This document shows positions 26,195-43,152 of a DNA stretch of 64,000 nt, one piece after another (within the stretch, counting starts at the first letter, position 1; the number at the start of each line of letters is the position of its first letter). The notes beneath the pieces were generated by a model. It had not been told where the DNA came from. It did no database searches and saw nothing but the letters and a program-made list of their open reading frames with translations. The position numbers and the translations under genes were made by a program. Origin of the DNA: Guillardia theta CCMP2712. Its lineage: Eukaryota > Protista > Cryptophyta. The stretch covers positions 1,194,258-1,258,257 of the forward strand of contig NW_005434670.1 of assembly GCF_000315625.1 (NCBI RefSeq). The letters are read 5' to 3'.

Positions 26195-26583
26195 TGATGT
26201 TGCACCCGCATGACGTTACGTCAGTAACGGACATGGCAGCATCATGCGAGTAGTCGCAAGAGGCTACGTACGCTGGCGAGGTGTATAATGCTAGAATCGA
26301 AGATGTGTACTGGACGTAGACGTACGTACAACACATTGGTATGATGAAAGCATGAGGCTGGTATAAACCGATACACATGTTTACTCATTGCTGTATTACG
26401 GGTTAAGCCTGACCTCGACATATAAGCAACCCATCTTAGACGTTGGCCACGTCATCGGAATGGGATTGCACGAACATTGACGTGTGTTCTCTTACTGCTG
26501 TACATAAACAAATCTAGCTTCATTGTTCATCTGTTCTACTCCTAAGTGCACTATCGCTCAGTTGCTGGACTATACCCGCATCA
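26195..26583 (+). repeat. Element A 5' LTR (389 bp)
   Basis: Matches 33603-33775 + 42937-43152 (173 + 216 = 389 bp), no differences seen by eye. Confidence 0.97.
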
Positions 26584-26594
26584 GGTTATGAGCC
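26584..26594 (+). promoter_or_regulatory. Primer-binding site complementary to the tRNA-iMet anticodon arm (half-tRNA priming, Ty5/copia type)
   Basis: GGTTATGAGCC directly after the LTR-terminal CA; reverse complement of GGCUCAUAACC. Confidence 0.88.
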
Positions 26595-29500
26595 TCGCGT
26601 TAAAGGAACAGATGTCACCATACCGTCTACAATGGCCGCCAATCAATCAGCCTCAGGACTCGATGATTACAGCAGTAACACCCGAGAATATGCAAAGACT
26701 TGCCCCAGATATCGAGAACTTTATACAGTTCGAGTTGATAGGGCAATACTATGCATACCTCAACTCTGAAGGGAATCCAGAAAACATGAGAGCCTACTTC
26801 GATTGTCATTTTCCCATCAGAGATACTCAATCAGAAGAATTACAGGAAAACATGAGACAGAAAAGGAGAGAATTTGTACGAGAAGCAGATGCTGCTTTGA
26901 CGCAAATCCTCCACACTGTTTACATGCAATGCCCTGGCAGGATTCAGATTCTGAAAGCCCACATGGAAGAAGAACACAAATCCCCCGAGACGCCTACAAA
27001 GCTTTGCTTAGCTGGGATCAAGGCATGGACAGACTTTAAAAGACTAGACAAGCCAACCGAAGCAACAAAAGCTGAACAGACCCTTGCCAATCTCAAAGAA
27101 CTAGAGCAAGCAGTAATCTACAACGGAGACTACCAGAGTTACATCCCCAATGTGGTTAGGACCTTGAAGAAATTTGCTTCACAAGGCAAAGACTGCACTT
27201 TTATCTACACCCGTGCTTTCAAAGACGTTATCGACAACCTCAGAGCAATCGACGAAACGGGCGTTCAAGCAGAACTAGGTAGTTGGATAACATCTCAAAT
27301 CCATCGCAACGCAACGGAAGAAAATTTCTTCTACGAAGGAGAGCCACAGATTGAAGATTTTTTGAAATTCCATCAACATATGATGAACTTCACTACCAGA
27401 GGCACGAAACACCCAATACCTATCCTTCAAGCAGGACAAGAAAGCTCTGGCAAGAAATCAACAGAAGCACATCATTCAGGTCAGAAACGAAAGGCGAACG
27501 CCGTGTTTTCAGCCTCCATCAAGCAAAACAATACACCACAGAAAATCAGGAGACAACAACAAGAAAACTTTACTGGATGCAAAATCTGCAAAGAAAAACG
27601 ACTTCCAGCAAGGATTTCTCTCAGTCACGCTACCAGCGAGCATGACGCATCTAGGATCGGAGAAAGAGCCACTGGCAATAAAACAGCGCCAACCATGAAG
27701 AGGATCACAGGAAGCATTTCAACCGGTTTTCAGACAAGGGCAGGAAGATCCGCAAAATTTACCGCCAAGAGTCATCGCTCGTCGAACCCAAACCGTTCAA
27801 ACGAGGAGAGCGGACAATACCCGAAGTCAAAATACAAGCAAACAGTCAGCATCGACAAGAAGGTCCTCGTGAACCTCACAAAAGCGCTGCAAGAAGCCAC
27901 CTCTACCGACCAAACCGAAACCCAAGAATCCGTTCAAGAATCACCTAGCAGTGATGAAGACGAATCCGATGAACCGTCCTCATCTCGAACACCTCCGAAA
28001 CGACTGAAAGAAGTCGTAAAAGAGACGTTCCGAGGCACACTAGGACGCAGTTCTAGAAAGAATAAATCTCCCAAGGAGTATCCCTGTTCTAAAAATTATG
28101 TTGTATATCAAAGTGATACCAGGTCGAAAACTGACGAGATCCAACTGCACAAGCTTGATGCAGCTCTGTTCTCAAAAGTTTCAAAACCATGGTACCTTGA
28201 ATACATCTTTCATATACCCAGACTACTGATCAGGAACACTGATCGGTATCAAGTTTTCCTACACGCGTTAAAAGCGAAAGAACAACAAGAGTCCCTGTAC
28301 GCTATTGTCGACTCAGGTGCAACTGTAAGCGTACTCTGCAATCCAAGTTGGTTACAGAGATCGTTTACACACAAAACTGAGATCACCGGCGTGGGGGGCA
28401 GCAAGATCAATACATCGCTCGGAGGAATTCTAGCAGGAACGATAGCATCAATCGAAGGAAAACGTTTTGCATTTGCAACTATAGCAACAGTAATCAGCGA
28501 CGAAAATGCTAAAATCAACCTGTTATCCATCTGGCGAATTACAAATAGTGGTCATACAATAATCCACAAAGGTAAACCAGAAGGAGGACTACACGGAATC
28601 ATTACACTCAACAATGAATTTATACCTTTCTACTTCTGCCCAAGCACCTACCTATGGTACGTCGAAATTCAAAGACCAAACAGGAAGACCAATAAGATAA
28701 TCTCCAAGCTATCAGCAAAAACCATCTGGGATAAAGACACAATTCTCAGAGAAATTCAAGAAGGCGAAATACCACTCACGGCAACAATCAAGGAGTCAAC
28801 ACAAACGACAAATACACAAAGTACATCAAAACGCAGAATCCACCTGATCATCCATGGCGCAAGATTGGAGAGCGTACCTCGTTGGGGGGGAAGCATCCAC
28901 ATCTACCAAGCTGCGATGCAGGGGGAGAGCACAACTTCGGCAACAGCTTTCAAGCCCACGCACATGAAGACCTTTCCTATCAGCATGCGAGATGTACGAC
29001 CTGAATTAGACACGTCAGAAGAGTCAGACAGTGAAAATGGAGAGACCTTGGACAGTTGCAGCAGCTCCGATGACGAGCTGATGACTACTGACAACACTCC
29101 ATTAGAACCTGCAAGACAATTCACGACGGAAGAGATTCAACAGCAAACCAAGGAGTATCTTAACGATCCAAGATCATTTACAGATTTTGACGACTTTACA
29201 AACACAACGATCGAAGAACTTGACGAAAACGACAAGGAATACGAAGAACAATTGAAGAATGACAAATCAGATCTCAAGAATATTTACCTATATTCAACGG
29301 GAGAACGCATCAAAGGAACAAGAGCATCAGCGATTCTGCTCAAGTGGCACGTAAGAACCAACCACATCGGCAAGAAATACCTTTTCCAACTGGCAGAAAA
29401 CATCGAAGGCATGGAGGAATTGAAGAGAATCAATCCAAAAACACCCCTGCCGACATGTCACACATGCCGCAGAGCGAAAACCAAGGCAGCTCCATTACCA

Positions 29501-32500
29501 AAATTCAGACACAAAAGATCCGATGTCAGATTTCACAGGCTGCATGGGGATATGAGCTCCTATCGAGTCCGCTCGATCGAAGGAGCAAAGTACCTCCAAC
29601 TCTGGAAAGACGACTTCTCAGGATTCAAGATGCCTGTAGGTTTAGCGAGCAAGAAAGGTTACAGGAAATCGTTACGACTTGTTGTCACGAGATTCAACAA
29701 TGGGGTCTACCCCAAAGTGATTCGAGTTGACAATGGGAGCGAAATGGTTTCAAAGAAATCACTGAAGATGTACGAGAAGCACAACATCCACCTAGAAAGA
29801 AGCGCACCATATGAGCATTGGCAAAATGGAAGAGCTGAATCTGGAATCTACTCGTTAGATACAAGGACTAGATTGGCAATCGTACACTCAAACGTTCCGA
29901 AAAATCTCTGGCTCAGCGCTATATATTACAACGCAGAGATCGAGAATGCATTCCTTCCTACCAGCAGAAACTCAAACATCAGTTGCTACCAAGCGTTTAC
30001 AGGTACATCACCAAACGCAGAACACTTCCATCCATTCGGTTGCCTCTGCTACGTTCATATCCTAAAGGACAGAAGATTAGATCAAAAGAAAGACAAAAAA
30101 CTCGAGCCAACAGCAGAAGTTTGCGTGTTTCTTGGCTTCGCCCACCACCTAGGAATGAAAGGTTATTTGGCAGCAGCACTGAATGGGAAACAACTGTACG
30201 TCACACAGAACAATATAAGTTTCAACGAAGAAGTATTCCCCTACAGATTTTCTCACCCGGAGGACAGATCTTGGAAAATACCATACGGCGGAACTGATGA
30301 TTTTGGCGACGACAACGTCATTGTGCTCAAAAGAGCCGGTGAACGATTGATCGAAATGTCAGATACATCAGACGCATCAGATTCAGAATCTGAAGATGCC
30401 GGTGGAAACTCCAGCGCCCAACCTGAAGAAAGAAATCGACGACCGTTTGCAGATCAACAACATGGCATAGCACACAATGATCCCATGGTGATCCAAGTGA
30501 GGCAACAAGCTATTGAAGTTGACAACCATCTCACGAGAACCTGTTCTGAGACATCAGTTGTAAGAGAGAGTGATATCACACAAGACGAACAAGTAGCGGT
30601 GGATCCAGGACTATCAGAAAGAGGGCACATGAACCGTGAACTAGCCAGTCTTCAAGTCGAAACCTACAACAGTGGTGAAAAGGATTTTGAGTGGGATAAA
30701 CTCACCCAAATACCTGAACATCAACTGAGGTCAGGACGAATTGTACAGAAGACGAATGTGGACACACCGACAAGTGATTCAGACCACGAAGACAATGATC
30801 TTCCAGCAGGAATTGAAGAGTTCGACAATCAAGACTTCATCAATGCGACACTACTTCCCTTAACGAAGCGACAATACTGTGGAGTACTTGTCGACACATA
30901 CAATAACCTGGAAGAGAAAATCATGACATGGTCACACGGGCCACCACAACGAAACATGTACAACGAAAATCATTACAACGAAGAAATCGACAGCTTGATG
31001 TCTTTTCTTCAAGGATGCAAGAAAGATGAAAGAAGAGAATCAAGGATACAAAAAGCTCAACTATTCTACACAGGCATGTTGTCGGCAACCAGCCATATCG
31101 CGTTTGACAATGACGAACCAAGCATCAAAGAAGCTCTCAACAACAACAACCCAGAGAGACACCATTGGATAACAGCAATTCAGTCAGAGGCACGATCATG
31201 GAACGGACTAAAAGTATTCGAAGAAGTCGACAACATCCCAGACGGAAGAAAGGCAATCGGATGCAGAATCATCCTTAAAAGGAAAAGAGGACCGAATGGA
31301 GAAGTATTGAAATACAAGGCAAGAGCGATCATACAAGGTTACAACGCGGTACAAGGGATCGATTACCTCGACTCCTTCTCAGCGACAGCGAACCCAGTTA
31401 CGATCAGACTCCTTCTGACAATCGCCAGAGCAAACAAATGGCACGTCAGATGTCAAGATATCTCAACTGCATACCTGATGGCACCACTTCCTACAGTTGT
31501 ATATATCAGGACCCCAAAGGAATTTCAAGAGTTCTGCAACATTAGAGCAGCATACTTGAAGATCCTGAGTTCAGTCTATGGACTTCCTTCATCAGGTCGA
31601 AACTTCTGGAAGAAGCTCTGCCAAGACCTACGCGATTTCGGTTTCAAAGCCTGCACGTCAGATGATTGTTTGTTTCTATATCATGACGAGCAAGGGGAAG
31701 AGATCATCATCGCATTAGTAGTCGACGACATCATCCAAGCTAGCAACAGCCAAGCACTATTTGCAAAGTTCGACGACTTCATGATGAACACAAAAGGATA
31801 CAGCGTAACAACTGACAACGATCTTAGCTTCTATCTGGGAGTCGCGTACAAGAGGGACGAAGCTGGAGACTTCATCAGCAACCAGCAAGCGTACATCGAA
31901 AAATGTTTGAAAAGATTCAACCTTGAGGGGATCGACCCTACAGGGAAATTCACCACGCCAATGGATCCCAAGTTCGTGATCGAACCAGAAGACGTTGATC
32001 CGCACGCGCCTGAAGACTTAGTCAAAATTTACAGAAGCCAAGTAGCAAGTCTGATATACATAGCAACATGGTCAAGACCAGAAATCAGCTATGCAGTATC
32101 ATTGCTATCAAGATATCTCACAAGTCCTACGAAGAAACTGTTAATGGCAGTGCACAGAGTATACGCTTATCTCAAGAACACCAAGACACTAGGAATCAGA
32201 TACACCGACAACGATGACAACGGACACAAGAAAATGGAACTAGTCGCATTCTGCGATAGCTCAGACGCCGATTGCAAGCTCACAAGCAGATCAACCGGTG
32301 GATACGTCATTTTCCTCAATGGGACACCAATCTCATGGAAATCAGCAAGACACAACACAGTCTCACTGTCTACCATGGAAAGCGAATACATCCAAAGCAC
32401 GCTTACAGCTATCGAGATTTTGTACTTGCGAGAGACGCTCGAGTTCATGGGATACAAGCAACCTACGACGATATGCTATCAAGACAACGCCGCCTGCATC

Positions 32501-32734
32501 AAGCTCAGCGAGAATCCCGTCAGCAAGAGCAGATCGAAACACATCAAGAGAAGACACCACTTCATACGACAATGCGTTGCCAACAAGGAGATCACCTTGG
32601 AAGCAATTCATACAAGCGAGCAAGTTGCTGATATATTCACAAAACCGCTGCCCGCTGATCAGTTTCTCTACCTAAGAGACCAATTGTTGAACCTCCCTGA
32701 AGCAATACGCTATCAAAGGAAAACAAAAAAGTAA
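26588..32734 (+). CDS. Element A single gag-pol polyprotein (~2048 aa)
   Basis: Protease IVDSGAT; IN WHVRTNH..CHTC, LHGD..RVDNGSE..NGRAE; RT KYKARAIIQG, QDISTAYL, VYGLPSSGR, LVVDDI; RNase H FCDSS, STMESEY, YQDNAAC, VADIFTKPL. Confidence 0.96.
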   Translation: MSLALKEQMSPYRLQWPPINQPQDSMITAVTPENMQRLAPDIENFIQFELIGQYYAYLNSEGNPENMRAYFDCHFPIRDTQSEELQENMRQKRREFVREADAALTQILHTVYMQCPGRIQILKAHMEEEHKSPETPTKLCLAGIKAWTDFKRLDKPTEATKAEQTLANLKELEQAVIYNGDYQSYIPNVVRTLKKFASQGKDCTFIYTRAFKDVIDNLRAIDETGVQAELGSWITSQIHRNATEENFFYEGEPQIEDFLKFHQHMMNFTTRGTKHPIPILQAGQESSGKKSTEAHHSGQKRKANAVFSASIKQNNTPQKIRRQQQENFTGCKICKEKRLPARISLSHATSEHDASRIGERATGNKTAPTMKRITGSISTGFQTRAGRSAKFTAKSHRSSNPNRSNEESGQYPKSKYKQTVSIDKKVLVNLTKALQEATSTDQTETQESVQESPSSDEDESDEPSSSRTPPKRLKEVVKETFRGTLGRSSRKNKSPKEYPCSKNYVVYQSDTRSKTDEIQLHKLDAALFSKVSKPWYLEYIFHIPRLLIRNTDRYQVFLHALKAKEQQESLYAIVDSGATVSVLCNPSWLQRSFTHKTEITGVGGSKINTSLGGILAGTIASIEGKRFAFATIATVISDENAKINLLSIWRITNSGHTIIHKGKPEGGLHGIITLNNEFIPFYFCPSTYLWYVEIQRPNRKTNKIISKLSAKTIWDKDTILREIQEGEIPLTATIKESTQTTNTQSTSKRRIHLIIHGARLESVPRWGGSIHIYQAAMQGESTTSATAFKPTHMKTFPISMRDVRPELDTSEESDSENGETLDSCSSSDDELMTTDNTPLEPARQFTTEEIQQQTKEYLNDPRSFTDFDDFTNTTIEELDENDKEYEEQLKNDKSDLKNIYLYSTGERIKGTRASAILLKWHVRTNHIGKKYLFQLAENIEGMEELKRINPKTPLPTCHTCRRAKTKAAPLPKFRHKRSDVRFHRLHGDMSSYRVRSIEGAKYLQLWKDDFSGFKMPVGLASKKGYRKSLRLVVTRFNNGVYPKVIRVDNGSEMVSKKSLKMYEKHNIHLERSAPYEHWQNGRAESGIYSLDTRTRLAIVHSNVPKNLWLSAIYYNAEIENAFLPTSRNSNISCYQAFTGTSPNAEHFHPFGCLCYVHILKDRRLDQKKDKKLEPTAEVCVFLGFAHHLGMKGYLAAALNGKQLYVTQNNISFNEEVFPYRFSHPEDRSWKIPYGGTDDFGDDNVIVLKRAGERLIEMSDTSDASDSESEDAGGNSSAQPEERNRRPFADQQHGIAHNDPMVIQVRQQAIEVDNHLTRTCSETSVVRESDITQDEQVAVDPGLSERGHMNRELASLQVETYNSGEKDFEWDKLTQIPEHQLRSGRIVQKTNVDTPTSDSDHEDNDLPAGIEEFDNQDFINATLLPLTKRQYCGVLVDTYNNLEEKIMTWSHGPPQRNMYNENHYNEEIDSLMSFLQGCKKDERRESRIQKAQLFYTGMLSATSHIAFDNDEPSIKEALNNNNPERHHWITAIQSEARSWNGLKVFEEVDNIPDGRKAIGCRIILKRKRGPNGEVLKYKARAIIQGYNAVQGIDYLDSFSATANPVTIRLLLTIARANKWHVRCQDISTAYLMAPLPTVVYIRTPKEFQEFCNIRAAYLKILSSVYGLPSSGRNFWKKLCQDLRDFGFKACTSDDCLFLYHDEQGEEIIIALVVDDIIQASNSQALFAKFDDFMMNTKGYSVTTDNDLSFYLGVAYKRDEAGDFISNQQAYIEKCLKRFNLEGIDPTGKFTTPMDPKFVIEPEDVDPHAPEDLVKIYRSQVASLIYIATWSRPEISYAVSLLSRYLTSPTKKLLMAVHRVYAYLKNTKTLGIRYTDNDDNGHKKMELVAFCDSSDADCKLTSRSTGGYVIFLNGTPISWKSARHNTVSLSTMESEYIQSTLTAIEILYLRETLEFMGYKQPTTICYQDNAACIKLSENPVSKSRSKHIKRRHHFIRQCVANKEITLEAIHTSEQVADIFTKPLPADQFLYLRDQLLNLPEAIRYQRKTKK

Positions 32735-33602
32735 TTCATACGATGATTACCTTTGGTAATTTTCAAAATGAATAAACTTTTCTCAAACTTGTCTAAGATC
32801 CTTCGAAGGACAAAGACGCATACGCGAAGTGCTGAGCGCCTCTGGACTGTTCTAGTACCAGGGAGTAGCATAGTACAAGCGAAACCATAAGCATGTGGCA
32901 CAACTTGAGCATCCCTGGGGCATTGCGACTTCAGTGGGTAGTGATAGTTGCTTGCAAACGCAAATGGACATGGGAGAAAGGAGTAAGAGTTTCATAGCAC
33001 AGCTTCCCCATAGTGCATGGGCTGATATGGTGACATGGAAACATGATTGCTAATCAGGGCGATGGCGCGTAACATGATTTCTTTTGAAACATGGAAACGT
33101 ACTCTTCGTTAACTCACTACGTGGGTAACCGGCGTGTAGCAAAATGCTGCATAGCTGCTCTAAACTTCCATTGAAGCTAGTTGATGATGCGAAAAGCTAC
33201 ATCAGGGTTTGGAATTGCTTACCCCACACAATCAGCAGTGTGTGAAAGGCAATCCAACGTCTCGTTACCTCAAAAATGCTACACGCAATTCCTCACGTGC
33301 ATCCACAAAATGCTACGAAGGAAACGTAAAAGCATGTGGAAACGACGTGTTATGCTCACTGAAAGGCATATGAATGCATGTATGACTTTGGAACCTATGT
33401 CATTTGCTGAAACGTACTGGGAACTCACCGTCCTGGGCCACATTTGCATTTTGGCTTTCTGCCATTTTCGCATTTTGTTGGTTAGTTCGCGAAGAGACAA
33501 AGGGAGACCCTCATACAGCACCAGAATCGTTGGGTCGGTCCCGGTGTTGCATAAATCAATGCTCTCACGCAGTGACGACACTGAGTTTCGAGCAAGGGGG
33601 AG

Positions 33603-33775
33603 TGATGTTGCACCCGCATGACGTTACGTCAGTAACGGACATGGCAGCATCATGCGAGTAGTCGCAAGAGGCTACGTACGCTGGCGAGGTGTATAATGCT
33701 AGAATCGAAGATGTGTACTGGACGTAGACGTACGTACAACACATTGGTATGATGAAAGCATGAGGCTGGTATAAA
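33603..33775 (+). repeat. Element A 3' LTR, left part
   Basis: Same sequence as 26195-26367; ends in ATAAA, the TSD of element B. Confidence 0.96.
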
Positions 33776-34699
33776 TGTTGAAGCACCTGATAGGAGGAAG
33801 CTTCACCTCAGACAATGCCAAGTAATCGACGTGGCTCAAGTGCACAGATGCTTAGAGCCTCGGAATGCATCCCTGGAGAGGACAGCAACAGCTACAATAA
33901 GGACGACGTAGGAGAATCATGAAGAAGACAGCAAGAACTTAGGAATCGTGGATGGCAGCAGGAGATAAGCGAGCCAGCTTATATCAGTCCACGACAGGAC
34001 AGCAGATGACACGGTGGCAGGATATGGCTACACTCAAGGGGAGATTGGAAGTATCACCCCTGAAGTCATGGACATGGGAGAACAAGGGGTCTGATCAAAG
34101 AAGACAGTACTATCATGATCATCTTAGCGGAGGACATACAAGGAATGCACGAGACCACCTCCAAGCATGCTCCTACGGAGACACAGGACCTGTCAAGGTC
34201 AAGGGAGCAGCTACATCAACTTCACAGAGAGCGTTGGATGAGAATCGAAGACCTCGTCATGTCAAGCCTATGACTCTTTCTCAGGGGACCCTCAAGGTAC
34301 GGAACCAGGCCTCGGACCGGTCGAAGAATCATATCGCAGATAAGAAGCGTAGAGTACCGGTAGTGGTAGTTCCTAGGACCGGGCAGCCCCTATTTTAGGG
34401 ACCGAGGAAGAGGAAGAAGGGCCGCACGCATTGGCAGGACAGGGAAAGGAGAACGAGGTGTACAGTCTCTGTGAGACTGGGTTGCTTGAAGTAAACAAGC
34501 TTGACCATCTATACCAATCTCTTATCTCCTCCGTTTGTTCTCTGTATCCTGATATCATTCCTGCGTGGCCACCATTCGTGATATCTATTACCGCTGCTAC
34601 AGAAACTTGCAGTCGGTGCTATCACTGTCTACTTCGGGTGTCACTGCTACTGTGACTGTGTCACCGTCTGTGGAGAGAAGGTTACTGGGAACTTCAACA
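33776..34699 (+). repeat. Element B 5' LTR (924 bp)
   Basis: Repeated at 42008-42931 with a constant offset of 8232; internal ORF translations are identical. Confidence 0.97.
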
Positions 34700-34751
34700 T
34701 ATTCTAAAAATTTTAGAATATCAGTGCCTAGATATTCTATTTCTCGAGAAA
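34699..34751 (+). promoter_or_regulatory. Hairpin/palindrome cluster at the PBS position of element B
   Basis: ATATTCTAAAA-A-TTTTAGAATAT (34699-34721); alternative stem TAGAATATC/GATATTCTA (34714-34739); palindrome TTTCTCGAGAAA (34740-34751). Function is inferred. Confidence 0.7.
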
Positions 34752-34860
34752 CCTTGTATCACGGCAACCAGTGGACTCTTACTCTCACATTCGGAGTGAC
34801 ATCAGCGGGAGAGTATCTGTGGAGTGACAACGGTAGTAACAGCTGAGCCTGGAATCAAAC

Positions 34861-37791
34861 ATGGGCTCTGATATCAAAATGGCTATGGAAATTCATGAAG
34901 CGTTCTCAAAGACAAGCATTGACCTGACTAAGCTGAAGGATAATTCGGGCAACAATGTTTTTAAGACGGAGGAGGAAATGTGGGGTACGCTCAATCCGTT
35001 TTTCACAACTCTCGAACGAGTCAGGCCAGGACTACGAGACGTGTTCATGAATATCTTGTCATTGTTCCCGATCACCGAAGAAGACAGTGTAAACTTGGGT
35101 TCCAGGCTGGAGAAGAGTCTTACGTCTTGGGAAGAGCATGTAGATTTCGATGATGACGAAGGAAAGTTTTACACGACAATCGAATGGAAAGGAATCGTCG
35201 TGGGAGTTTTTCTCAGGAAAAACTGGCCGTTCAAGTCCATCAAGCGAGTAGAGGCAACTGTAACCGATCTGAAGAGACGTTTCGACGAGTTCCAGGAGGA
35301 GTCACAGGAGCCTGAGGACCAAGAAAACTACCAGTGGTTAATCGATGCAGAAGTCACTGCTAGCGGGGAAAGCAGAAGGGCAAGACTGAGGCAGAGATTA
35401 CCTTGGGATTTGACAAATGATAAAACAGTACAGGGCATTGCGGCCCTATACAAAGACGTGATGGAGATTACGGAAGAAATCAATCAGTTCTTCAAAAATC
35501 GACTGACGGAGATCTTTCCTAGAGCATTACGACTGTCGGGGCAAGAAGATTATCCTCTGTCTGGATACCTCGGATTCTCTTATGTGAAATATTGGATATC
35601 ACTTCAATTCAGGAACCGTACAGCACCGAGAAATCTGATTGACCGCGTCAAGAGTCTAGTCTCGGAGGCTGAAGTTGATGACTTCGAGAAACTGCTTGAC
35701 ATCCCCCTAGAGGTTTGCTCCCTCCTCAAGCAGTTGAAAAGGAAAGAAGCAATCTCGACGGGTGGCACTCAAGAAGTTGTTGACTTGGAAAAGGAATTAG
35801 TGCGGAGTCTTCTGGGCAAATGTAAGACGTCGAAGATCGACGAAGTATCTTTCTTGGGGAGGATACAGGCTGCTGAGGGTAGATTGATAACCATGTCGGA
35901 AGTTCAGCGCAGAATTTCTAATATCTACGCCGAGCACAAGGCGCGAAGACAGTATGAAGGGCCTACACTGCGTCATCATAAGACAGCTAACTTGGGCCAT
36001 GCTCAAACAGGGGCCACCAAACATTCCGATCATCCATCGTCAGAGCCAGGATCAAGTGGTGCTCGACATGGCAGGAATAACGATGTACCGGGACGAGGAT
36101 TCCAGCATGGGAGACATCGTGGTTCGGACTCGCGCGGCGGAGGATGGCGTGACTCGCAGTCACTCCCGGATGGCAATCCGATCCGGTATGATCAGCAACA
36201 AGCCTCTGATCATTCTCCCTGGCAGGCTCATGGTAACACTCATCGGCGAGGACAATGGCGAAATCCCTCACGCGGCAGATCGCAAGAACAGCAAGCGTTG
36301 CATACGCGAGAAGAAGGCAACGGCAGCTGCGAAGGAGCTCCATCATACAGGCAACACGATGGGAGAGGTCGCTTCAATCCAAGAGGGAAGGGAGCCAATC
36401 GTGGGGGACGAGGGCGGATGCAACCAGGTCGCAGAGGACGACGAGAGCACTGGACGGGCCCTCTGATCCCGCACCGTGATGATCACCAGCCTCGGGTGCA
36501 ATCTGACGAAGAGCAGGAGGACTCGGTTGTAGGACGAGCAGCAGGCGGCACTGCGGGCAGCTCGGGAGATTCGTGGCAAAGAAGGAGACAGAGGGGACAC
36601 GGGCCTGGACATGCGACTAGGGGCATGAGGCACGATCCCGGGACTCGTATGTATGAAAACAGTCGTGTTGCATTGCTGGAAGAAAAACTCGATATTTTGA
36701 CAGACCGACTGATGGAGAGACTTGCTCCTGATCATTCCAGCCGGACAGAAGTATCACGGAGGCAAGCCGCTCCTCATGCAAATGAGAGGAGGGTCCTGTA
36801 CCTGACAGATGGTCGATCGGCGGTGGACGATGTGGCCTTGATAGGTCAGGCACCAGCAACCTCGGATAGGAGAACAAGAAATGTGAGCCAGAGGCTTGGC
36901 GAACGAGAAGAAGTGGATTCTTGTCAGGAAGCCTCAGATACAGATAATCCATTTCAATCAGGTGACATTCATGTACGACGAGTTATGCGCAGGGTGCACG
37001 TCTGTCTTGATATCGAAAAATTGCTCAGAGCTAAGGCGTTCCTGAACGTACACTTACCGGGTTGTCACCATATGTTACTCGATACCGGAGCTAATATCAG
37101 TCTCTGCGGTGACAGATCTCTATTGACGAATGTGCGTAAAAGTCTACAAGCCACTGTTGTCAGCACAGCCAGCGGGGAGACATTTACGTGCGAGGAAGAA
37201 GGAGAAATGAGAGTGCAATGTGCAATTACAAGCAATGGAAATGTTACTATCGCACATACATTCGTACTTACAGCAATGGTATGTGCAGAGACTCCGCTCA
37301 CCATCTTTTCAATGAGTCAATTTCTTGGAGAAGAGACAACTGTGGAACTGTCTGGGAAGTCAACTGGATCTTGGGTTCGTATGCCAGATAACTTACTGTT
37401 ACCTGTACACCTTTGGGAGGGAATCTATGTGCTTAAAGCAGCAGTTGATAAGTCTCGACACTCACTTGTCATCGCAGCACAGTCAAGCAGCCGTAATACT
37501 GAGGCAGCGGCCCTACTGACAAAGTGTGCAGCAGAGCCCTCCACTGCTGAAGAAGACAAGGTATCACTGAAATCCTTGAGCAACAAGGACATTCCAGCCT
37601 CCCCATTCAACCCAATTCCAACCATTCTGTGGCACTGGAGACTTGGGCTTGGCAAAAGGGAACAACAAAGTGACATACAGTCCAACCCATCGCACAGCAG
37701 GTCCTTGTCATGTTTGTCAAACCAGCAAATTCTCAAAGCTACCTATCAAAACCCAAGGCGGCTACCGACAAGAAAGAGCCGAAAGGATTAA
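34861..37791 (+). CDS. Element B ORF1: Gag (RGG-rich) + aspartic protease + start of integrase zinc finger
   Basis: 976 aa; MLLDTGANIS protease; ILWHWRLG pre-integrase motif near 37630. Confidence 0.9.
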   Translation: MGSDIKMAMEIHEAFSKTSIDLTKLKDNSGNNVFKTEEEMWGTLNPFFTTLERVRPGLRDVFMNILSLFPITEEDSVNLGSRLEKSLTSWEEHVDFDDDEGKFYTTIEWKGIVVGVFLRKNWPFKSIKRVEATVTDLKRRFDEFQEESQEPEDQENYQWLIDAEVTASGESRRARLRQRLPWDLTNDKTVQGIAALYKDVMEITEEINQFFKNRLTEIFPRALRLSGQEDYPLSGYLGFSYVKYWISLQFRNRTAPRNLIDRVKSLVSEAEVDDFEKLLDIPLEVCSLLKQLKRKEAISTGGTQEVVDLEKELVRSLLGKCKTSKIDEVSFLGRIQAAEGRLITMSEVQRRISNIYAEHKARRQYEGPTLRHHKTANLGHAQTGATKHSDHPSSEPGSSGARHGRNNDVPGRGFQHGRHRGSDSRGGGWRDSQSLPDGNPIRYDQQQASDHSPWQAHGNTHRRGQWRNPSRGRSQEQQALHTREEGNGSCEGAPSYRQHDGRGRFNPRGKGANRGGRGRMQPGRRGRREHWTGPLIPHRDDHQPRVQSDEEQEDSVVGRAAGGTAGSSGDSWQRRRQRGHGPGHATRGMRHDPGTRMYENSRVALLEEKLDILTDRLMERLAPDHSSRTEVSRRQAAPHANERRVLYLTDGRSAVDDVALIGQAPATSDRRTRNVSQRLGEREEVDSCQEASDTDNPFQSGDIHVRRVMRRVHVCLDIEKLLRAKAFLNVHLPGCHHMLLDTGANISLCGDRSLLTNVRKSLQATVVSTASGETFTCEEEGEMRVQCAITSNGNVTIAHTFVLTAMVCAETPLTIFSMSQFLGEETTVELSGKSTGSWVRMPDNLLLPVHLWEGIYVLKAAVDKSRHSLVIAAQSSSRNTEAAALLTKCAAEPSTAEEDKVSLKSLSNKDIPASPFNPIPTILWHWRLGLGKREQQSDIQSNPSHSRSLSCLSNQQILKATYQNPRRLPTRKSRKD

Positions 37792-40700
37792 TAGCCAGTG
37801 GAATGTGGATTTGAAAGACATGGGGACAGTCTCGGAGCCAGGAAGATTTCGTTACTTCTTGGTCGTGGTCGATGCCTACAGTGGATTTATTATAACGATT
37901 CCATTGACGTCAAAAGGCGAAACTAAGGAAGTCATGCAGAGTTTGATCTTGCAGGAAGAACGCTCAGGTCGACCAGCAGTCATAACAGTAGTGAGTGACA
38001 ACGGCTCGGAGTTTGCAAACCTCCAGTTGCAGTCATTCGTGAAGATGAAGGGGATCATCTGGAATTTTACCCCGGACTACACAAGTGCTGCCAACGGTCG
38101 AGCAGAGAGGGCGATCCGAACAGTGACTACCATCCATCGAGCAATCTCGTACCAAGCACAAGTCCCGCAGCGCTTCTGGCACTTCTCCGTCCAACAAGCA
38201 ACGCTGATCTTCAACAGTTTACCCAACCTGACGAATCGGGACGGCCTATCTCCCTGGCAACTTTATCAGGGACGAGAATTCGACTATGATAAACTGAAGG
38301 TGTTCGGATGTACGGTATTTGTTGCCAACGAGGAGAAATTGAAGAATGATATGCCTGCTATTACTGCTGTTAACCTGGGAAATTCAGAGGCTCACATGGG
38401 TTACCAGCCAGGGTACTTGGTATTCAATCCAGCTACCAACAAGGTGATACATACGCGACAAGCAAGATTTGATGAGACCTTCTTTCATTTCAGAAGGACC
38501 AGTAGACTGCATCTACCCCCAGGACAGGAGTATGTTGGACTGCGCGAGGTGGATGAACATTGCTCAACTCAGAATGATCATGGAGCAACCAGCTCGGAAG
38601 CCTCGGATGGCAGTATGGCAGAGTCCAGTGAAGACGATGGACACGATGCAGACTGGCAACCTGAACAGTCCGCAGATCAGAAGCAATCGATAACTGCTGG
38701 GGAACCTGTGCTGGGAAGCGAGGACGGCGAAGTCGGCAGAAAACGTACAAGAAGCGATTTTCGATCGGATCGAACCTTAATGGAACGGCAGTATGTCAAC
38801 CGCAAAGTAACATATGGAACAAGGGCGGCGACGATAACGCAGATTGTGTTCAGAAACGGGGCATTTTACTTGAAAATCAAATATGACGATTCAGACAATG
38901 ATTGGATTATTGTTCCTACAACGGACCCGAAACTACGTCTGACATCTGAACGCGTGAATCTGGTCACAATGATCCGTTCTAGACGGTCAGGAAGCCAATC
39001 GACCTTAACAGGAATGTTTAATCAATCCCGGACGGCAGAAGCGGCCTATTCCTTCTGTGCAAGGGGCATATCTCAGCCTGCCGAGGACGACAGTAACCAG
39101 ACGAACGTCGGGCCGGAGCAAGCGTCTCACAGCAAAATGCTGATAGCCTACATGTGTAAATTCATGGATGTCTCAGAAGCTCAGGGAAATACAGTTCAAT
39201 TATTGCAGACAAGTGCGGCAGACAATTCGGCCAGCAGCAGGATCGACACTACCGGTAGAATCCAAGCTCCGAAGACCAGAAAGCAAATGTTGCTGAGCGC
39301 AGAAAGACACCAATGGTTGCAAGCTGAGCTTAAAGAACTCAACAGTATGAAGGAAAAGGGAGTGTGGGAAGAAGTGGATTATCCCAGCAACCGAAAGGCG
39401 AAGATCGCTCCATTCCAATGGGTGTATACTTTGAAATACAATACTGAAGGTGAGATTGCGAAATTTAAGGCGAGGTTGGTCATCCTGGGCAATCTAGTTC
39501 CCACTGATGGTCCAGTATATGCTCCAACGTCAGATTTCCAGAACGTTAGGCTCATTTGTGCAATTGCCGCTGGAAACGCCTGGTTGTTGACGATGCGAGA
39601 TATTTCGACCGCGTTTTTGAATGCAGATATCGACGAGGAAATTTACATGTTACCTCCAGAACAGCTCGCCTTACCAAGGGGAAGACTACTTCGTCTGAAG
39701 AAGAGCCTGTATGGCCTGTCAACCAGCCCGCGGAGTTGGTTCAAATGTTTCACGAAGACTCTGAAGAAGATGGGATGTCGTCTAGTCGGCGTCGACGAGG
39801 TACTTTTTGTCTACGAGAATGCCAGTGGTCATCGAATCATTGGGACCATCTTCGTTGACGATATCTTGCTGGCTTCTCAGTCAGAAGCAATCTTGTCTGA
39901 ATTCCTGCTCAAACTCTCTGACCATTTTGAATTTTCCGAGTCCCCTCAGGCGACTGGAACATTCCTGGGAGTCAAAATAACACAAGACTTGGCTCAAGGC
40001 ACCGTCGAGCTCAACCAGACACATTTTATCCATCAGATTGTTGAGCGATTCGAAATACCTCAAAAGTCAGTGCGAAGCGTCTTACCACACGATTATGTCT
40101 CCTCCTACCACCTAGAGGATGATCTGGTGTTGAATGAGAAGCAAATTCGACTGTACCAAGCTCTGCTAGGTTCACTTCTGTACCTCACCGCCGCGACCAG
40201 GCCAGATATATGTTTTGCGGTCAGCCTGCTGAGCCGATTTGCCAAACGGCCTCGGATTAGCGACGTCAAGGCCGTAATCCATCTGACTCAATACGTTTAT
40301 AACACTCGTGAACAGAGCTTAACGTTCTCCCAATCGGGTACATTCTTCAATCAACAGCATTATCACAACACTCTGATAGCTGCGAGTGATTCCACCTGGG
40401 GAACAGATCCAATTACACGTCGTTCTCAAGGAGGGATTGTGATTTCTTTTAACGGAGGTCCAGTTAACTTCTCCAGCAAACTGCAGAAGGTCGTCAGCTT
40501 ATCGAGTACGGAAGCCGAGTTGTACAGTTGCTCCAACTGTGCGAAGGCGATACGGACGCTGCGATCCATCCTGCTCGAACTGGGGTTTGTACAGCGTGAC
40601 CCAACAATCATTCTCGTTGATAATGCAGCGGTCATCCATCTGCTGAGGGACCGTCGCGCATTTTCGAAGCTTAAGCATATTGCAATTCGACATCGGTTCA

Positions 40701-40855
40701 CTCTTCAGATGGTGGATGAAAACGAAATCATCGCTGTGAAGATTGCTACTACATACAACCCTGCGGACATTCTCACCAAGATCTGCCCAGTCTCCAAAAT
40801 TCGTCAGCTAGCATCGTTCTTGTTCGGCAACGACATGTCTCAGGTCTCCGTTTGA
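37643..40855 (+). CDS. Element B ORF2 (+1 frame): integrase, reverse transcriptase, RNase H
   Basis: CHVC; WNVDL..VVSDNGSEF..NGRAER; KFKARLV, RDISTAFL, LYGLSTSPR, IFVDDI; ASDSTW, SSTEAEL, VDNAAV, NPADILTK. Confidence 0.93.
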   Translation: MGLAKGNNKVTYSPTHRTAGPCHVCQTSKFSKLPIKTQGGYRQERAERINSQWNVDLKDMGTVSEPGRFRYFLVVVDAYSGFIITIPLTSKGETKEVMQSLILQEERSGRPAVITVVSDNGSEFANLQLQSFVKMKGIIWNFTPDYTSAANGRAERAIRTVTTIHRAISYQAQVPQRFWHFSVQQATLIFNSLPNLTNRDGLSPWQLYQGREFDYDKLKVFGCTVFVANEEKLKNDMPAITAVNLGNSEAHMGYQPGYLVFNPATNKVIHTRQARFDETFFHFRRTSRLHLPPGQEYVGLREVDEHCSTQNDHGATSSEASDGSMAESSEDDGHDADWQPEQSADQKQSITAGEPVLGSEDGEVGRKRTRSDFRSDRTLMERQYVNRKVTYGTRAATITQIVFRNGAFYLKIKYDDSDNDWIIVPTTDPKLRLTSERVNLVTMIRSRRSGSQSTLTGMFNQSRTAEAAYSFCARGISQPAEDDSNQTNVGPEQASHSKMLIAYMCKFMDVSEAQGNTVQLLQTSAADNSASSRIDTTGRIQAPKTRKQMLLSAERHQWLQAELKELNSMKEKGVWEEVDYPSNRKAKIAPFQWVYTLKYNTEGEIAKFKARLVILGNLVPTDGPVYAPTSDFQNVRLICAIAAGNAWLLTMRDISTAFLNADIDEEIYMLPPEQLALPRGRLLRLKKSLYGLSTSPRSWFKCFTKTLKKMGCRLVGVDEVLFVYENASGHRIIGTIFVDDILLASQSEAILSEFLLKLSDHFEFSESPQATGTFLGVKITQDLAQGTVELNQTHFIHQIVERFEIPQKSVRSVLPHDYVSSYHLEDDLVLNEKQIRLYQALLGSLLYLTAATRPDICFAVSLLSRFAKRPRISDVKAVIHLTQYVYNTREQSLTFSQSGTFFNQQHYHNTLIAASDSTWGTDPITRRSQGGIVISFNGGPVNFSSKLQKVVSLSSTEAELYSCSNCAKAIRTLRSILLELGFVQRDPTIILVDNAAVIHLLRDRRAFSKLKHIAIRHRFTLQMVDENEIIAVKIATTYNPADILTKICPVSKIRQLASFLFGNDMSQVSV

Positions 40856-42007
40856 CCATCATTACGCCGCTGCTTCATGCAAGACCTTGTCAAGCTAGCC
40901 AAGCTCCCTGTACCTCGTCAGGGAGGGAGATGGATGATGCGAAGTCACAGGGGACCCACTTCAGCCTGAGGTCATCTGTTCGACACCAGAGACAGTCAGG
41001 GAGGGGTTCACTAAATGAACAATCAAAATCAGGGAATATCATATCTTTTCACTATCATACCTGAATACTGAACTTCATGACAGGCTGAACCTCTGAGAAC
41101 ATCTGATGATGACATCAGCATCGAGCCTCGCATCATACCTATGTCATGTGACATGGACGAGTCACAGGGATCCCCCAAGCAGAGCCAAGAGTCGCACAAG
41201 ATGACGACGAGGCCACCAGATAGCTCTCCCACCATGATGATGAGTGTGGCAAAGAAGCTGAGGGGTGACATGACAGCGAGAAAATCTCGATGATGGAGGG
41301 ATCAGTCCTGATCAAAGTCGCTCTGAATGTCAAAAGTGACAAGAGCTGTTTTCAATCCAACCTGGCAAAGCCTGTACGTGGCCAACCAGTGAGGAGAGGA
41401 ATTACCTCATGATTCCACTGGTCAAGCACCGCGATGATTGAAGCGGCAAGCCTAGAGCACGGCAGATGAAAGCTTGAAGGTTGTGAAGATCGAGGAAGGG
41501 AGACGTCCCATTGAAGCCTCATTGCATGCCACGATCTCACGATGGCGATATGATCTCACGAAGCAACTCTACAGCAGAGTTGAAGAAATGAAAGGCAGCT
41601 TGAAGCGCCAAGCCTTCGCAAGACGAAGAAGCAGACGATGAAGACATACCTTCGATCGAAGTTATGAAATGATGCTGCAGAAATGAAGGAGGTTCTAAGT
41701 CGCCAGGCACATCAGTGCTGATGGGCGCTGAGGAGAACCTTTCAGTACCATGCACAGCCCTACTGCGAAAGTCAAGTCAAGAGGCTGATCGCTTATGGAA
41801 AGAGGAATATCAAGTCTGATGAGCAACCATACAGCTTCAAGGCAGACGACCAGAGACCAAGCATGAGTCCACCTTGCTGTCAAGCAACAGCTCCCGCCTA
41901 CTCTAGGCAAGGGAGGAAATACTGCGGCGACGACGCGCGAAGAGTCAACCGCAGCAGGCGCGGCAAAGCAACAATGCTGGCATCGGCACACAAGAGCCAA
42001 GGGAGGG

Positions 42008-42931
42008 TGTTGAAGCACCTGATAGGAGGAAGCTTCACCTCAGACAATGCCAAGTAATCGACGTGGCTCAAGTGCACAGATGCTTAGAGCCTCGGAATGC
42101 ATCCCTGGAGAGGACAGCAACAGCTACAATAAGGACGACGTAGGAGAATCATGAAGAAGACAGCAAGAACTTAGGAATCGTGGATGGCAGCAGGAGATAA
42201 GCGAGCCAGCTTATATCAGTCCACGACAGGACAGCAGATGACACGGTGGCAGGATATGGCTACACTCAAGGGGAGATTGGAAGTATCACCCCTGAAGTCA
42301 TGGACATGGGAGAACAAGGGGTCTGATCAAAGAAGACAGTACTATCATGATCATCTTAGCGGAGGACATACAAGGAATGCACGAGACCACCTCCAAGCAT
42401 GCTCCTACGGAGACACAGGACCTGTCAAGGTCAAGGGAGCAGCTACATCAACTTCACAGAGAGCGTTGGATGAGAATCGAAGACCTCGTCATGTCAAGCC
42501 TATGACTCTTTCTCAGGGGACCCTCAAGGTACGGAACCAGGCCTCGGACCGGTCGAAGAATCATATCGCAGATAAGAAGCGTAGAGTACCGGTAGTGGTA
42601 GTTCCTAGGACCGGGCAGCCCCTATTTTAGGGACCGAGGAAGAGGAAGAAGGGCCGCACGCATTGGCAGGACAGGGAAAGGAGAACGAGGTGTACAGTCT
42701 CTGTGAGACTGGGTTGCTTGAAGTAAACAAGCTTGACCATCTATACCAATCTCTTATCTCCTCCGTTTGTTCTCTGTATCCTGATATCATTCCTGCGTGG
42801 CCACCATTCGTGATATCTATTACCGCTGCTACAGAAACTTGCAGTCGGTGCTATCACTGTCTACTTCGGGTGTCACTGCTACTGTGACTGTGTCACCGTC
42901 TGTGGAGAGAAGGTTACTGGGAACTTCAACA
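42008..42931 (+). repeat. Element B 3' LTR (924 bp)
   Basis: Direct repeat of 33776-34699. Confidence 0.97.
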
Positions 42932-42936
42932 ATAAA

Positions 42937-43152
42937 CCGATACACATGTTTACTCATTGCTGTATTACGGGTTAAGCCTGACCTCGACATATAAGCAACC
43001 CATCTTAGACGTTGGCCACGTCATCGGAATGGGATTGCACGAACATTGACGTGTGTTCTCTTACTGCTGTACATAAACAAATCTAGCTTCATTGTTCATC
43101 TGTTCTACTCCTAAGTGCACTATCGCTCAGTTGCTGGACTATACCCGCATCA
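42937..43152 (+). repeat. Element A 3' LTR, right part
   Basis: Same sequence as 26368-26583, followed by TSD AATCA. Confidence 0.96.

Follow-up and report, generated by a model that had tools for sequence, protein, structure and literature searches.

Element B, a complete Ty1/copia LTR retrotransposon of 9.2 kb (33776–42931), lies within the window, i.e. the whole 64-kb stretch of DNA analysed here, and it raises the question of how reverse transcription is started where the usual binding site for a tRNA primer is missing. The original prediction was that a hairpin with two alternative folds stands in the place of the primer-binding site (PBS) and might itself be involved in priming. The analysis points to a three-part cis-acting RNA module that has replaced the tRNA PBS, and the most likely mechanism, to which a probability of about one half is given, is minus-strand self-priming from the element's own 3' arm. 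A lineage of large copia elements in this cryptophyte genome probably starts reverse transcription from its own RNA.

Element B is read on the + strand. The 5' LTR of 924 bp (33776–34699, with the ends TGTTGAAG...CTTCAACA) is the same as the 3' LTR (42008–42931) at 924 of 924 bases, and the pair is flanked by the target-site duplication ATAAA (33771–33775 on the left, 42932–42936 on the right). The interior holds ORF1, a gag-protease frame of 976 aa (34861–37791), and ORF2 in the +1 frame (37643–40855), with an integrase core, an SH3-like domain, an RVT_2 reverse transcriptase and RNase H; a polypurine tract, AGAGCCAAGGGAGGG (41993–42007), adjoins the 3' LTR. The Pfam matches of ORF2 are rve (residues 48–146), SH3_retrovirus (210–282) and RVT_2 (574–807), and residues 739–797 of ORF1 give a weak match to Pol_BBD (E 0.0021; 18.8 bits, under the 27-bit cut-off). 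The motifs DTGA, KARLVI, FVDD, TRPDI and ADILTK were found. Both the order protease–integrase–RVT_2–RNase H and the combination of LTRs bounded by TG...CA, a target duplication of 5 bp and a polypurine tract next to the 3' LTR are those of Ty1/copia elements (Pseudoviridae). A further ORF of 148 aa inside the LTR (33952–34398) has no Pfam match. Another contig of the genome encodes a sequence 100% identical over 1257 residues to a UniRef protein labelled Guillardia theta, which makes the host this cryptophyte or one that cannot be told apart from it.

Compared with a metagenomic relative (L081), element B lacks 26 nt at about 37649/37650, within the WHWRLGH/HHCC zinc-finger region of the integrase. 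This gap shifts the frame and thereby splits gag-pol into ORF1 and ORF2; an assembly error might also account for it. A copy of the same family (family 1) on contig C251 has gag-pol as one open frame of 2015 aa. The earlier view that element B moved recently agrees with the identity of its LTRs and the intact target duplication but had overlooked the frameshift in the integrase. Either this copy was mobilised by proteins supplied in trans or it was damaged after insertion.

The search for a primer

The original prediction was right that neither TGG nor GGTTAT follows the CA that ends the 5' LTR of element B: TATTCTAAAAA stands there, and the first TGG is found ~70 nt downstream. Element B has neither a PBS of the TGG type, as in elements primed by a tRNA 3' end, nor one of the tRNA-iMet anticodon stem-loop type (GGTTATGAG...) or of a comparable type for another tRNA, as in elements primed by a half-tRNA. 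The 11-mer complement of the site, TTTTTAGAATA, has 29 matches in the 87-Mb genome, against 34 for a reversed-pattern control. Eight of these 29 are family 1 copies, and not one of the remaining 21 sites in this genome-wide search with exact 11-mers coincides with a tRNA. Direct inspection covered 19 distinct host tRNA sequences and an initiator-type tRNA-Met, among which the best match to the 11-mer was 8/11 with G-U pairs included. No tRNA complementary to the PBS was found at the 21 genomic sites or among the inspected tRNAs, in line with the original prediction. A comparison of 33776–34900 with Rfam, at E values up to 1, returned no known RNA family.

A positive control was available in element A (26195–33775 and 42932–43152), the copia element within whose 3' LTR element B sits, splitting it in two. 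Element A has an LTR at 26195–26583 and a 2062-aa ORF at 26546–32734. Its PBS, GGTTATGAGCCTCGCG (26584–26599), is by its sequence a classical half-tRNA-iMet site. The 14-mer complement of this PBS has 52 genomic matches against 0 for the control, and the test found two gene copies of tRNA-Met(CAT) with GCGAGGCTCATAACC, which offers 15 complementary bases. The search method therefore works, and the genome hosts copia elements that are primed in the conventional manner; from the 52 matches it appears that several LTR families probably use one primer. The pol proteins of elements A and B are 27% identical. With this control in place, a tRNA primer for element B was rejected on the strength of the genome-wide 11-mer search. 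The nuclear tRNA set (loci L031–L060) includes tRNA-Ile(GAT) in multiple copies and a tRNA-Ile(TAT).

A primer of the Tf1/sushi type, located in the LTR, was rejected as well. No complement of at least 8 nt to 34700–34730 exists elsewhere in element B, LTR included, and the best LTR match to the 11-mer, again with G-U pairs, is 8/11, which is no better than the 8–10 reached by shuffled LTRs. A transcript 5' end complementary to the PBS was another observation that the original prediction had named as contrary to it; the sequence at 34433–34448, where RNA reads pile up (see below), has no complementarity to the PBS of element B.

The palindrome, its two folds and its sister families

The sequence that occupies the primer site is a perfect palindrome, ATATTCTAAAA-A-TTTTAGAATAT (34699–34721), which starts on the last base of the LTR and so lies at the exact annealing place for a primer. 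The inverted repeat with 11-nt arms that had been predicted is borne out without a mismatch, with ATATTCTAAAA at 34699–34709, the central A at 34710 and TTTTAGAATAT at 34711–34721. The 5' arm beyond the LTR, TATTCTAAAA, holds together with the central A the position of a functional PBS (34700–34710), and the 3' arm (34711–34721) is a candidate self-primer on account of its regular placement relative to the LTR boundary. The second, mutually exclusive pairing is equally real at the level of complementarity: TAGAATATC (34714–34722) is the complement of GATATTCTA (34731–34739), a competing repeat, called A2 here, that has a counterpart in each of two further families. The spacer between them (34723–34730) would form the loop of the alternative fold and is the sole poorly conserved stretch of the leader. 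A 12-nt palindrome, TTTCTCGAGAAA (34740–34751), follows as claimed and opens a nearly invariant part of the leader (34740–34800); it is kept within family 1 and in a metagenomic relative (L119, 83–85% identical), no counterpart was recognised in family 2, and it could be a dimerisation signal. Among perfect palindromes whose arms measure 10 nt or more and whose spacer does not exceed 1 nt, 34699–34721 is unique in the window, for which shuffled sequence gives an expectation of 0.15.

Family 1 comprises eight genomic copies, in which the leader is unchanged except for the central base (34710), which is A or T. A gag search revealed two more families in the same genome, with intact frames of 2042–2179 aa. 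Their gag proteins are 23–25% identical to that of family 1, and identity in pol is 38–47% between families 3 and 1 and 53–62% between families 2 and 3. Each has a different perfect palindrome at the end of its 5' LTR, namely (A)ATACAAAAAGAAAA/TTTTCTTTTTGTAT(T) in family 2 and ACAAAGAGAAAA/TTTTCTCTTTGT in family 3. Counted outward from the dyad, family 1 departs from families 2 and 3 at positions 5, 6, 7, 8, 10 and 11 of either arm, and the arms of families 2 and 3 are distinguished by a single compensated pair (A:T versus G:C), with which the downstream repeat changes. The A2 counterparts, GATATTCTA in family 1, GGAATACAAAAAGA in family 2 and GAACTGGAACAAAGAG in family 3, lie 9, 13 and ~70 nt downstream across the three families, and each pairs with the 3' arm of its own family and with the bases just 3' of that arm. 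The 5' arm, the 3' arm and the downstream repeat therefore all co-vary from family to family. Pairs were tabulated by script: the odd dyad of family 1 and the even dyads of families 2 and 3 lack a common ungapped column structure. One decayed copy of family 2 has G:T where G:C stood before.

The palindrome overlaps the LTR by 1 nt in family 1, by 3–4 nt in family 2 (4 nt in the copies with a 30-bp palindrome) and by 1 nt in family 3, the LTR ends being placed from the limits of LTR-only matches, and the centre of the dyad lies 10–11 nt beyond the LTR end in all three. By the same limits, ...CCAATA is the LTR end of family 2 and ...CGATTA that of family 3 (L089:1233–1235, L099:1145), so that their termini appear to be TG...TA as against the canonical TG...CA. 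The alignment of family copies and relatives that had been proposed as a check thus found the hairpin kept, both stems co-varying and a normal PBS in none of the three families. The shared architecture is a matter of common ancestry and not of three independent inventions.

The relative L119 adds a finer comparison. All 22 arm bases are kept, only the central A being missing, A2 is kept too, and the next 60 nt of the leader are almost unchanged. Of the 7 aligned positions of the spacer that separates A2 from the 3' arm, 4 have changed, and a 16-nt insertion lies downstream of A2. This concentration of changes in the spacer is the pattern to be expected of stems and a loop. Elsewhere the yield was smaller: a gag profile search of the genome gave no clear family beyond the three, a gag scan of metagenomes returned only the contig already known, which begins 260 nt after the hairpin, and a protein Atlas search for further relatives produced nothing usable. 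One weak and more diverged gag match on contig C120 has no recognisable 5' end. On contig C44 (L008, L015), a family 1 copy is broken after TATTC, the first five bases of the PBS, by an insertion of ~2 kb whose ends are GC-rich inverted repeats (CAGACGGTCCGATCC...), a type of sequence that flanks many family 1 solo LTRs.

Folding calculations give both structures a place. The isolated hairpin of family 1 has a folding z of –4.7, and the palindromic hairpin is present in the minimum-free-energy fold of contexts of 131–146 nt (131 nt for element B). In short constructs, the helix between the 3' arm and A2 is the minimum-free-energy fold, at –8.9, –12.0 and –30.2 kcal/mol in families 1, 2 and 3, respectively, and the 3' arm–A2 fold is thus predicted to be competitive in all three. 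The stem of family 1 is weak at –5.7 kcal/mol, which counts against its use in self-priming.

Proposed self-priming and its rivals

Conservation and covariation of the hairpin and of its two folds in three families and in L119 argue that the hairpin is functional, and its place is the site at which a primer has to anneal. As the PBS is specific to each family and compensated in a way that is beyond the reach of a host primer, the partner of the PBS would be the element's own 3' arm. The fixed distance of 10–11 nt between LTR end and dyad equals the length of a primer–PBS duplex (the Tf1 primer has 11 nt), and this favours self-priming. We infer that the 3' arm acts as the primer once it has been cut, and likewise its use in cis or in trans and the role of A2.

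On this model, the 10–11 nt of the 3' arm beside the dyad would pair with the first 10–11 nt downstream of the LTR. If the arm were then cut endonucleolytically at its 3' end (boundary 34720–34721), perhaps by the element's own RNase H if the analogy with Tf1 holds, a 3'-OH would come to lie opposite the first base past U5, and reverse transcriptase would elongate it into U5-R. The predicted primer would end in ...UUUUAGAAUA (34711–34720 or 34721) and be joined to DNA complementary to 34699 and the bases to its left. A2 would compete for the 3' arm, so that each RNA would adopt either a hairpin state, in which the 3' arm occupies the PBS, or an open state, in which the 3' arm is bound to A2 and the PBS is free for a primer from a sibling RNA. 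An RNA in the open state would be an intact template that could be copied completely, the cut sibling RNAs acting as primer donors. A cut strictly in cis would split the hairpin from the remaining template and so yield progeny without the 3' arm and the spacer; a fold-back in cis would therefore require that another intact RNA be copied, or that the polymerase jump the nick or pass end to end between templates.

It weighs against self-priming that a perfect palindrome without a loop is equally fit for dimerisation between RNA molecules. The palindrome might then be mainly a signal for dimerisation and packaging of the genomic RNA, forming an intermolecular duplex of 22–30 bp like the retroviral DIS, and the true primer would be something else. 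The absence of a loop in families 2 and 3, and a single central base in family 1, would suit a symmetric duplex ideally, cofolding prefers the dimer over two monomers by 7–15 kcal/mol, and the analogy with the DIS was raised by Donnart et al. too (PMC5445492). We nevertheless regard this as unlikely, for it accounts neither for the distance to the dyad, fixed at 10–11 nt despite a varying outer limit of the palindrome, nor for the lack of any further PBS candidate behind the LTR. The element would still need a primer, and the tRNA and LTR searches found none; moreover, dimerisation is compatible with self-priming in trans. A host RNA other than a tRNA might instead prime on TATTCTAAAAA, as might a modified or organellar tRNA that the assembly does not contain, with the hairpin regulating access. 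Such an RNA could have escaped a genome-wide search that was confined to exact 11-mers and in which the 21 other sites were checked for tRNA genes only, and the tRNA set inspected directly is incomplete. This is very unlikely all the same, given three different PBSs that are each matched by their own 3' arm, including one compensated change between families 2 and 3, 11-mer matches at the level of the control (29 versus 34) and an empty Rfam result for 33776–34900.

The palindrome could also act as DNA, either as the binding site of a dimeric protein or as a snap-back primer for the second strand. Perfect palindromes with no spacer are typical of dimeric DNA-binding sites, and in families 2 and 3 the 5' arm is a polypurine run, like the plus-strand primers that resist RNase H. 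The co-varying A2, 9–70 nt away behind a variable spacer, points to RNA helices instead. A weak pointer in the same direction, since it comes from the single decayed family 2 copy, is its G:T in place of an earlier G:C, a pair that only RNA tolerates. Priming of the minus strand would in any case be left unsolved, and a function as DNA is hardly likely. The frameshifted integrase of element B would suit a dead element with a decayed PBS and a chance palindrome, but the comparative data effectively refute this: the LTRs are the same, eight copies share one leader, sister copies have intact frames of 2015–2179 aa and the module is present in all three families as well as in L119. Chance would supply 0.15 such palindromes per 64 kb, and the interior is deeply covered in probable RNA runs next to a flank near zero.

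Known systems and evidence of transcription

The closest precedent is in fungal copia elements of the GalEa type, which have no PBS and carry a Conserved Hairpin Site instead (Donnart 2017, BMC Genomics 18:410, PMC5445492). This site consists of 9 bp that form a palindrome once the LTR's last base, an A, is counted in, and of an inverse-complementary sequence 12–41 bp downstream, and according to Donnart et al. it fits no priming model (PMC5445492). In the literature after 2017, one paper that mentions the Conserved Hairpin Site, with no mechanism, was found and none that resolves it. The original prediction named tRNA and Tf1-type priming as the known modes and left out the GalEa precedent (PMC5445492).

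The likenesses are several. Both are copia elements without a PBS of the tRNA type; in both, element B included, the palindrome after the LTR is perfect only if the terminal A of the LTR is counted; in both, the extended leader is better conserved than the LTR; and neither has a complement in U5 or R, so that neither is Tf1-like. Each also has a complementary partner a little further downstream that makes a hairpin possible, though the agreement is partial: the cryptophyte partner, 9, 13 and ~70 nt away in the three families as against 12–41 bp in GalEa, complements the 3' arm and not the palindrome as a whole. The differences are of sequence and geometry. The CHSeq1 of GalEa is a 9-mer that hardly varies, CTGATCAGT or CTAATTAGT, with its dyad ~4 nt from the LTR end, whereas the cryptophyte palindromes are 23–30 bp long and family-specific with the dyad at 10–11 nt. 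In GalEa CHSeq2 the palindrome is repeated in full, apart from an A/A mismatch that is fixed, whereas the cryptophyte A2 complements only the 3' arm and its adjoining 3' bases, with no fixed mismatch. The arms of element B are accordingly unrelated to the CHSeq1 consensus and much longer, and its helices are perfect, lacking the A/A mismatch. The cryptophyte elements are of 9.2 kb with LTRs of 490–924 bp and a polyprotein of ~2000 aa, as against 5.4–7 kb and LTRs of ~235 bp in GalEa, and the reverse transcriptase and RNase H motifs are KARLVI, FVDD and TRPDI in element B but KSRLVI, QTDD and CQPEA in fungal GalEa. The hosts are a cryptophyte and fungi, respectively; size, LTR length and motifs set the two apart but are not decisive for membership of the GalEa clade. 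Judged from the sequences, the cryptophyte module would follow the logic of the Conserved Hairpin Site with another length, sequence, geometry, element size and host, possibly by convergence.

Tf1 uses as its primer the 11 nt with which its transcript begins, within the LTR (Levin; Lin and Levin 1997, cited in PMC5445492, PMC6934838), and Tf1-like self-priming has been predicted for the TAR copia elements of plants (Neumann et al. 2019, PMC6317226). The mechanism proposed here shares with Tf1 the absence of a tRNA primer, a primer taken from the element's own RNA, a primer–PBS duplex of ~11 bp and, as a candidate step, a cut by RNase H in an RNA:RNA duplex. It differs in that the LTR of element B contains no complement, the sole complement lying right 3' of the PBS, and in that a third, competing segment is conserved. 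Copia elements primed by half-tRNA-iMet, such as Drosophila copia, Ty5, Osser and Bryco (PMC6317226), belong to the same superfamily as element B, and element A is of that type; element B and its sister families, in contrast, have no complementarity to tRNA-iMet or to any tRNA inspected. We would suggest, tentatively and with somewhat less assurance than for self-priming as such, a third priming route for LTR elements, in which the primer is cut from the element's own RNA right 3' of the PBS and a conserved competitor helix sets the role of donor or template; the GalEa hairpin would be a second, shorter version of it.

How copia elements without a tRNA site are primed has been a standing question since the GalEa hairpin was reported in 2017. 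Covariation among three families of a single genome identifies the pairing partners, and the fixed geometry of 10–11 nt predicts the end of the primer. With a culturable host and apparent transcription, the RNA–DNA junction of strong-stop cDNA is open to direct sequencing. Independence from host tRNA would free the elements from defences in which tRNA-derived small RNAs hit the tRNA primer site.

Transcription is indicated by two probable host RNA assemblies (X1 and X5), in which the whole interior of element B is represented with no differences at a word depth of 243–625, against 0–5 right beside the element; family 1 therefore appears to be transcribed. In raw reads from one RNA run, of which 6% was read, sense-strand coverage is confined to 34266–34709 with no read across the hairpin, and these reads speak neither for nor against a cut. 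Sense-strand read starts pile up in a 16-nt window at 34433–34448, 35–50 nt downstream of CTATTTTAGG (34390–34399). This may be the transcription start, i.e. the start of R. The piled reads each have ~10 unmatched, non-consensus leading bases, probably a tag belonging to the read structure. Contig ends at 34670, 34699 and 34711 were considered as RNA ends and rejected, being explained by branching of the assembly graph where the LTR ends and where 34710 varies between A and T. The middle of the LTR (33970–34340) reaches a word depth of 4,700–28,000 in the probable RNA assemblies, compared with the 243–625 of the interior, and this signal comes either from a very abundant LTR-derived transcript or from an unrelated repeat with the same segment.
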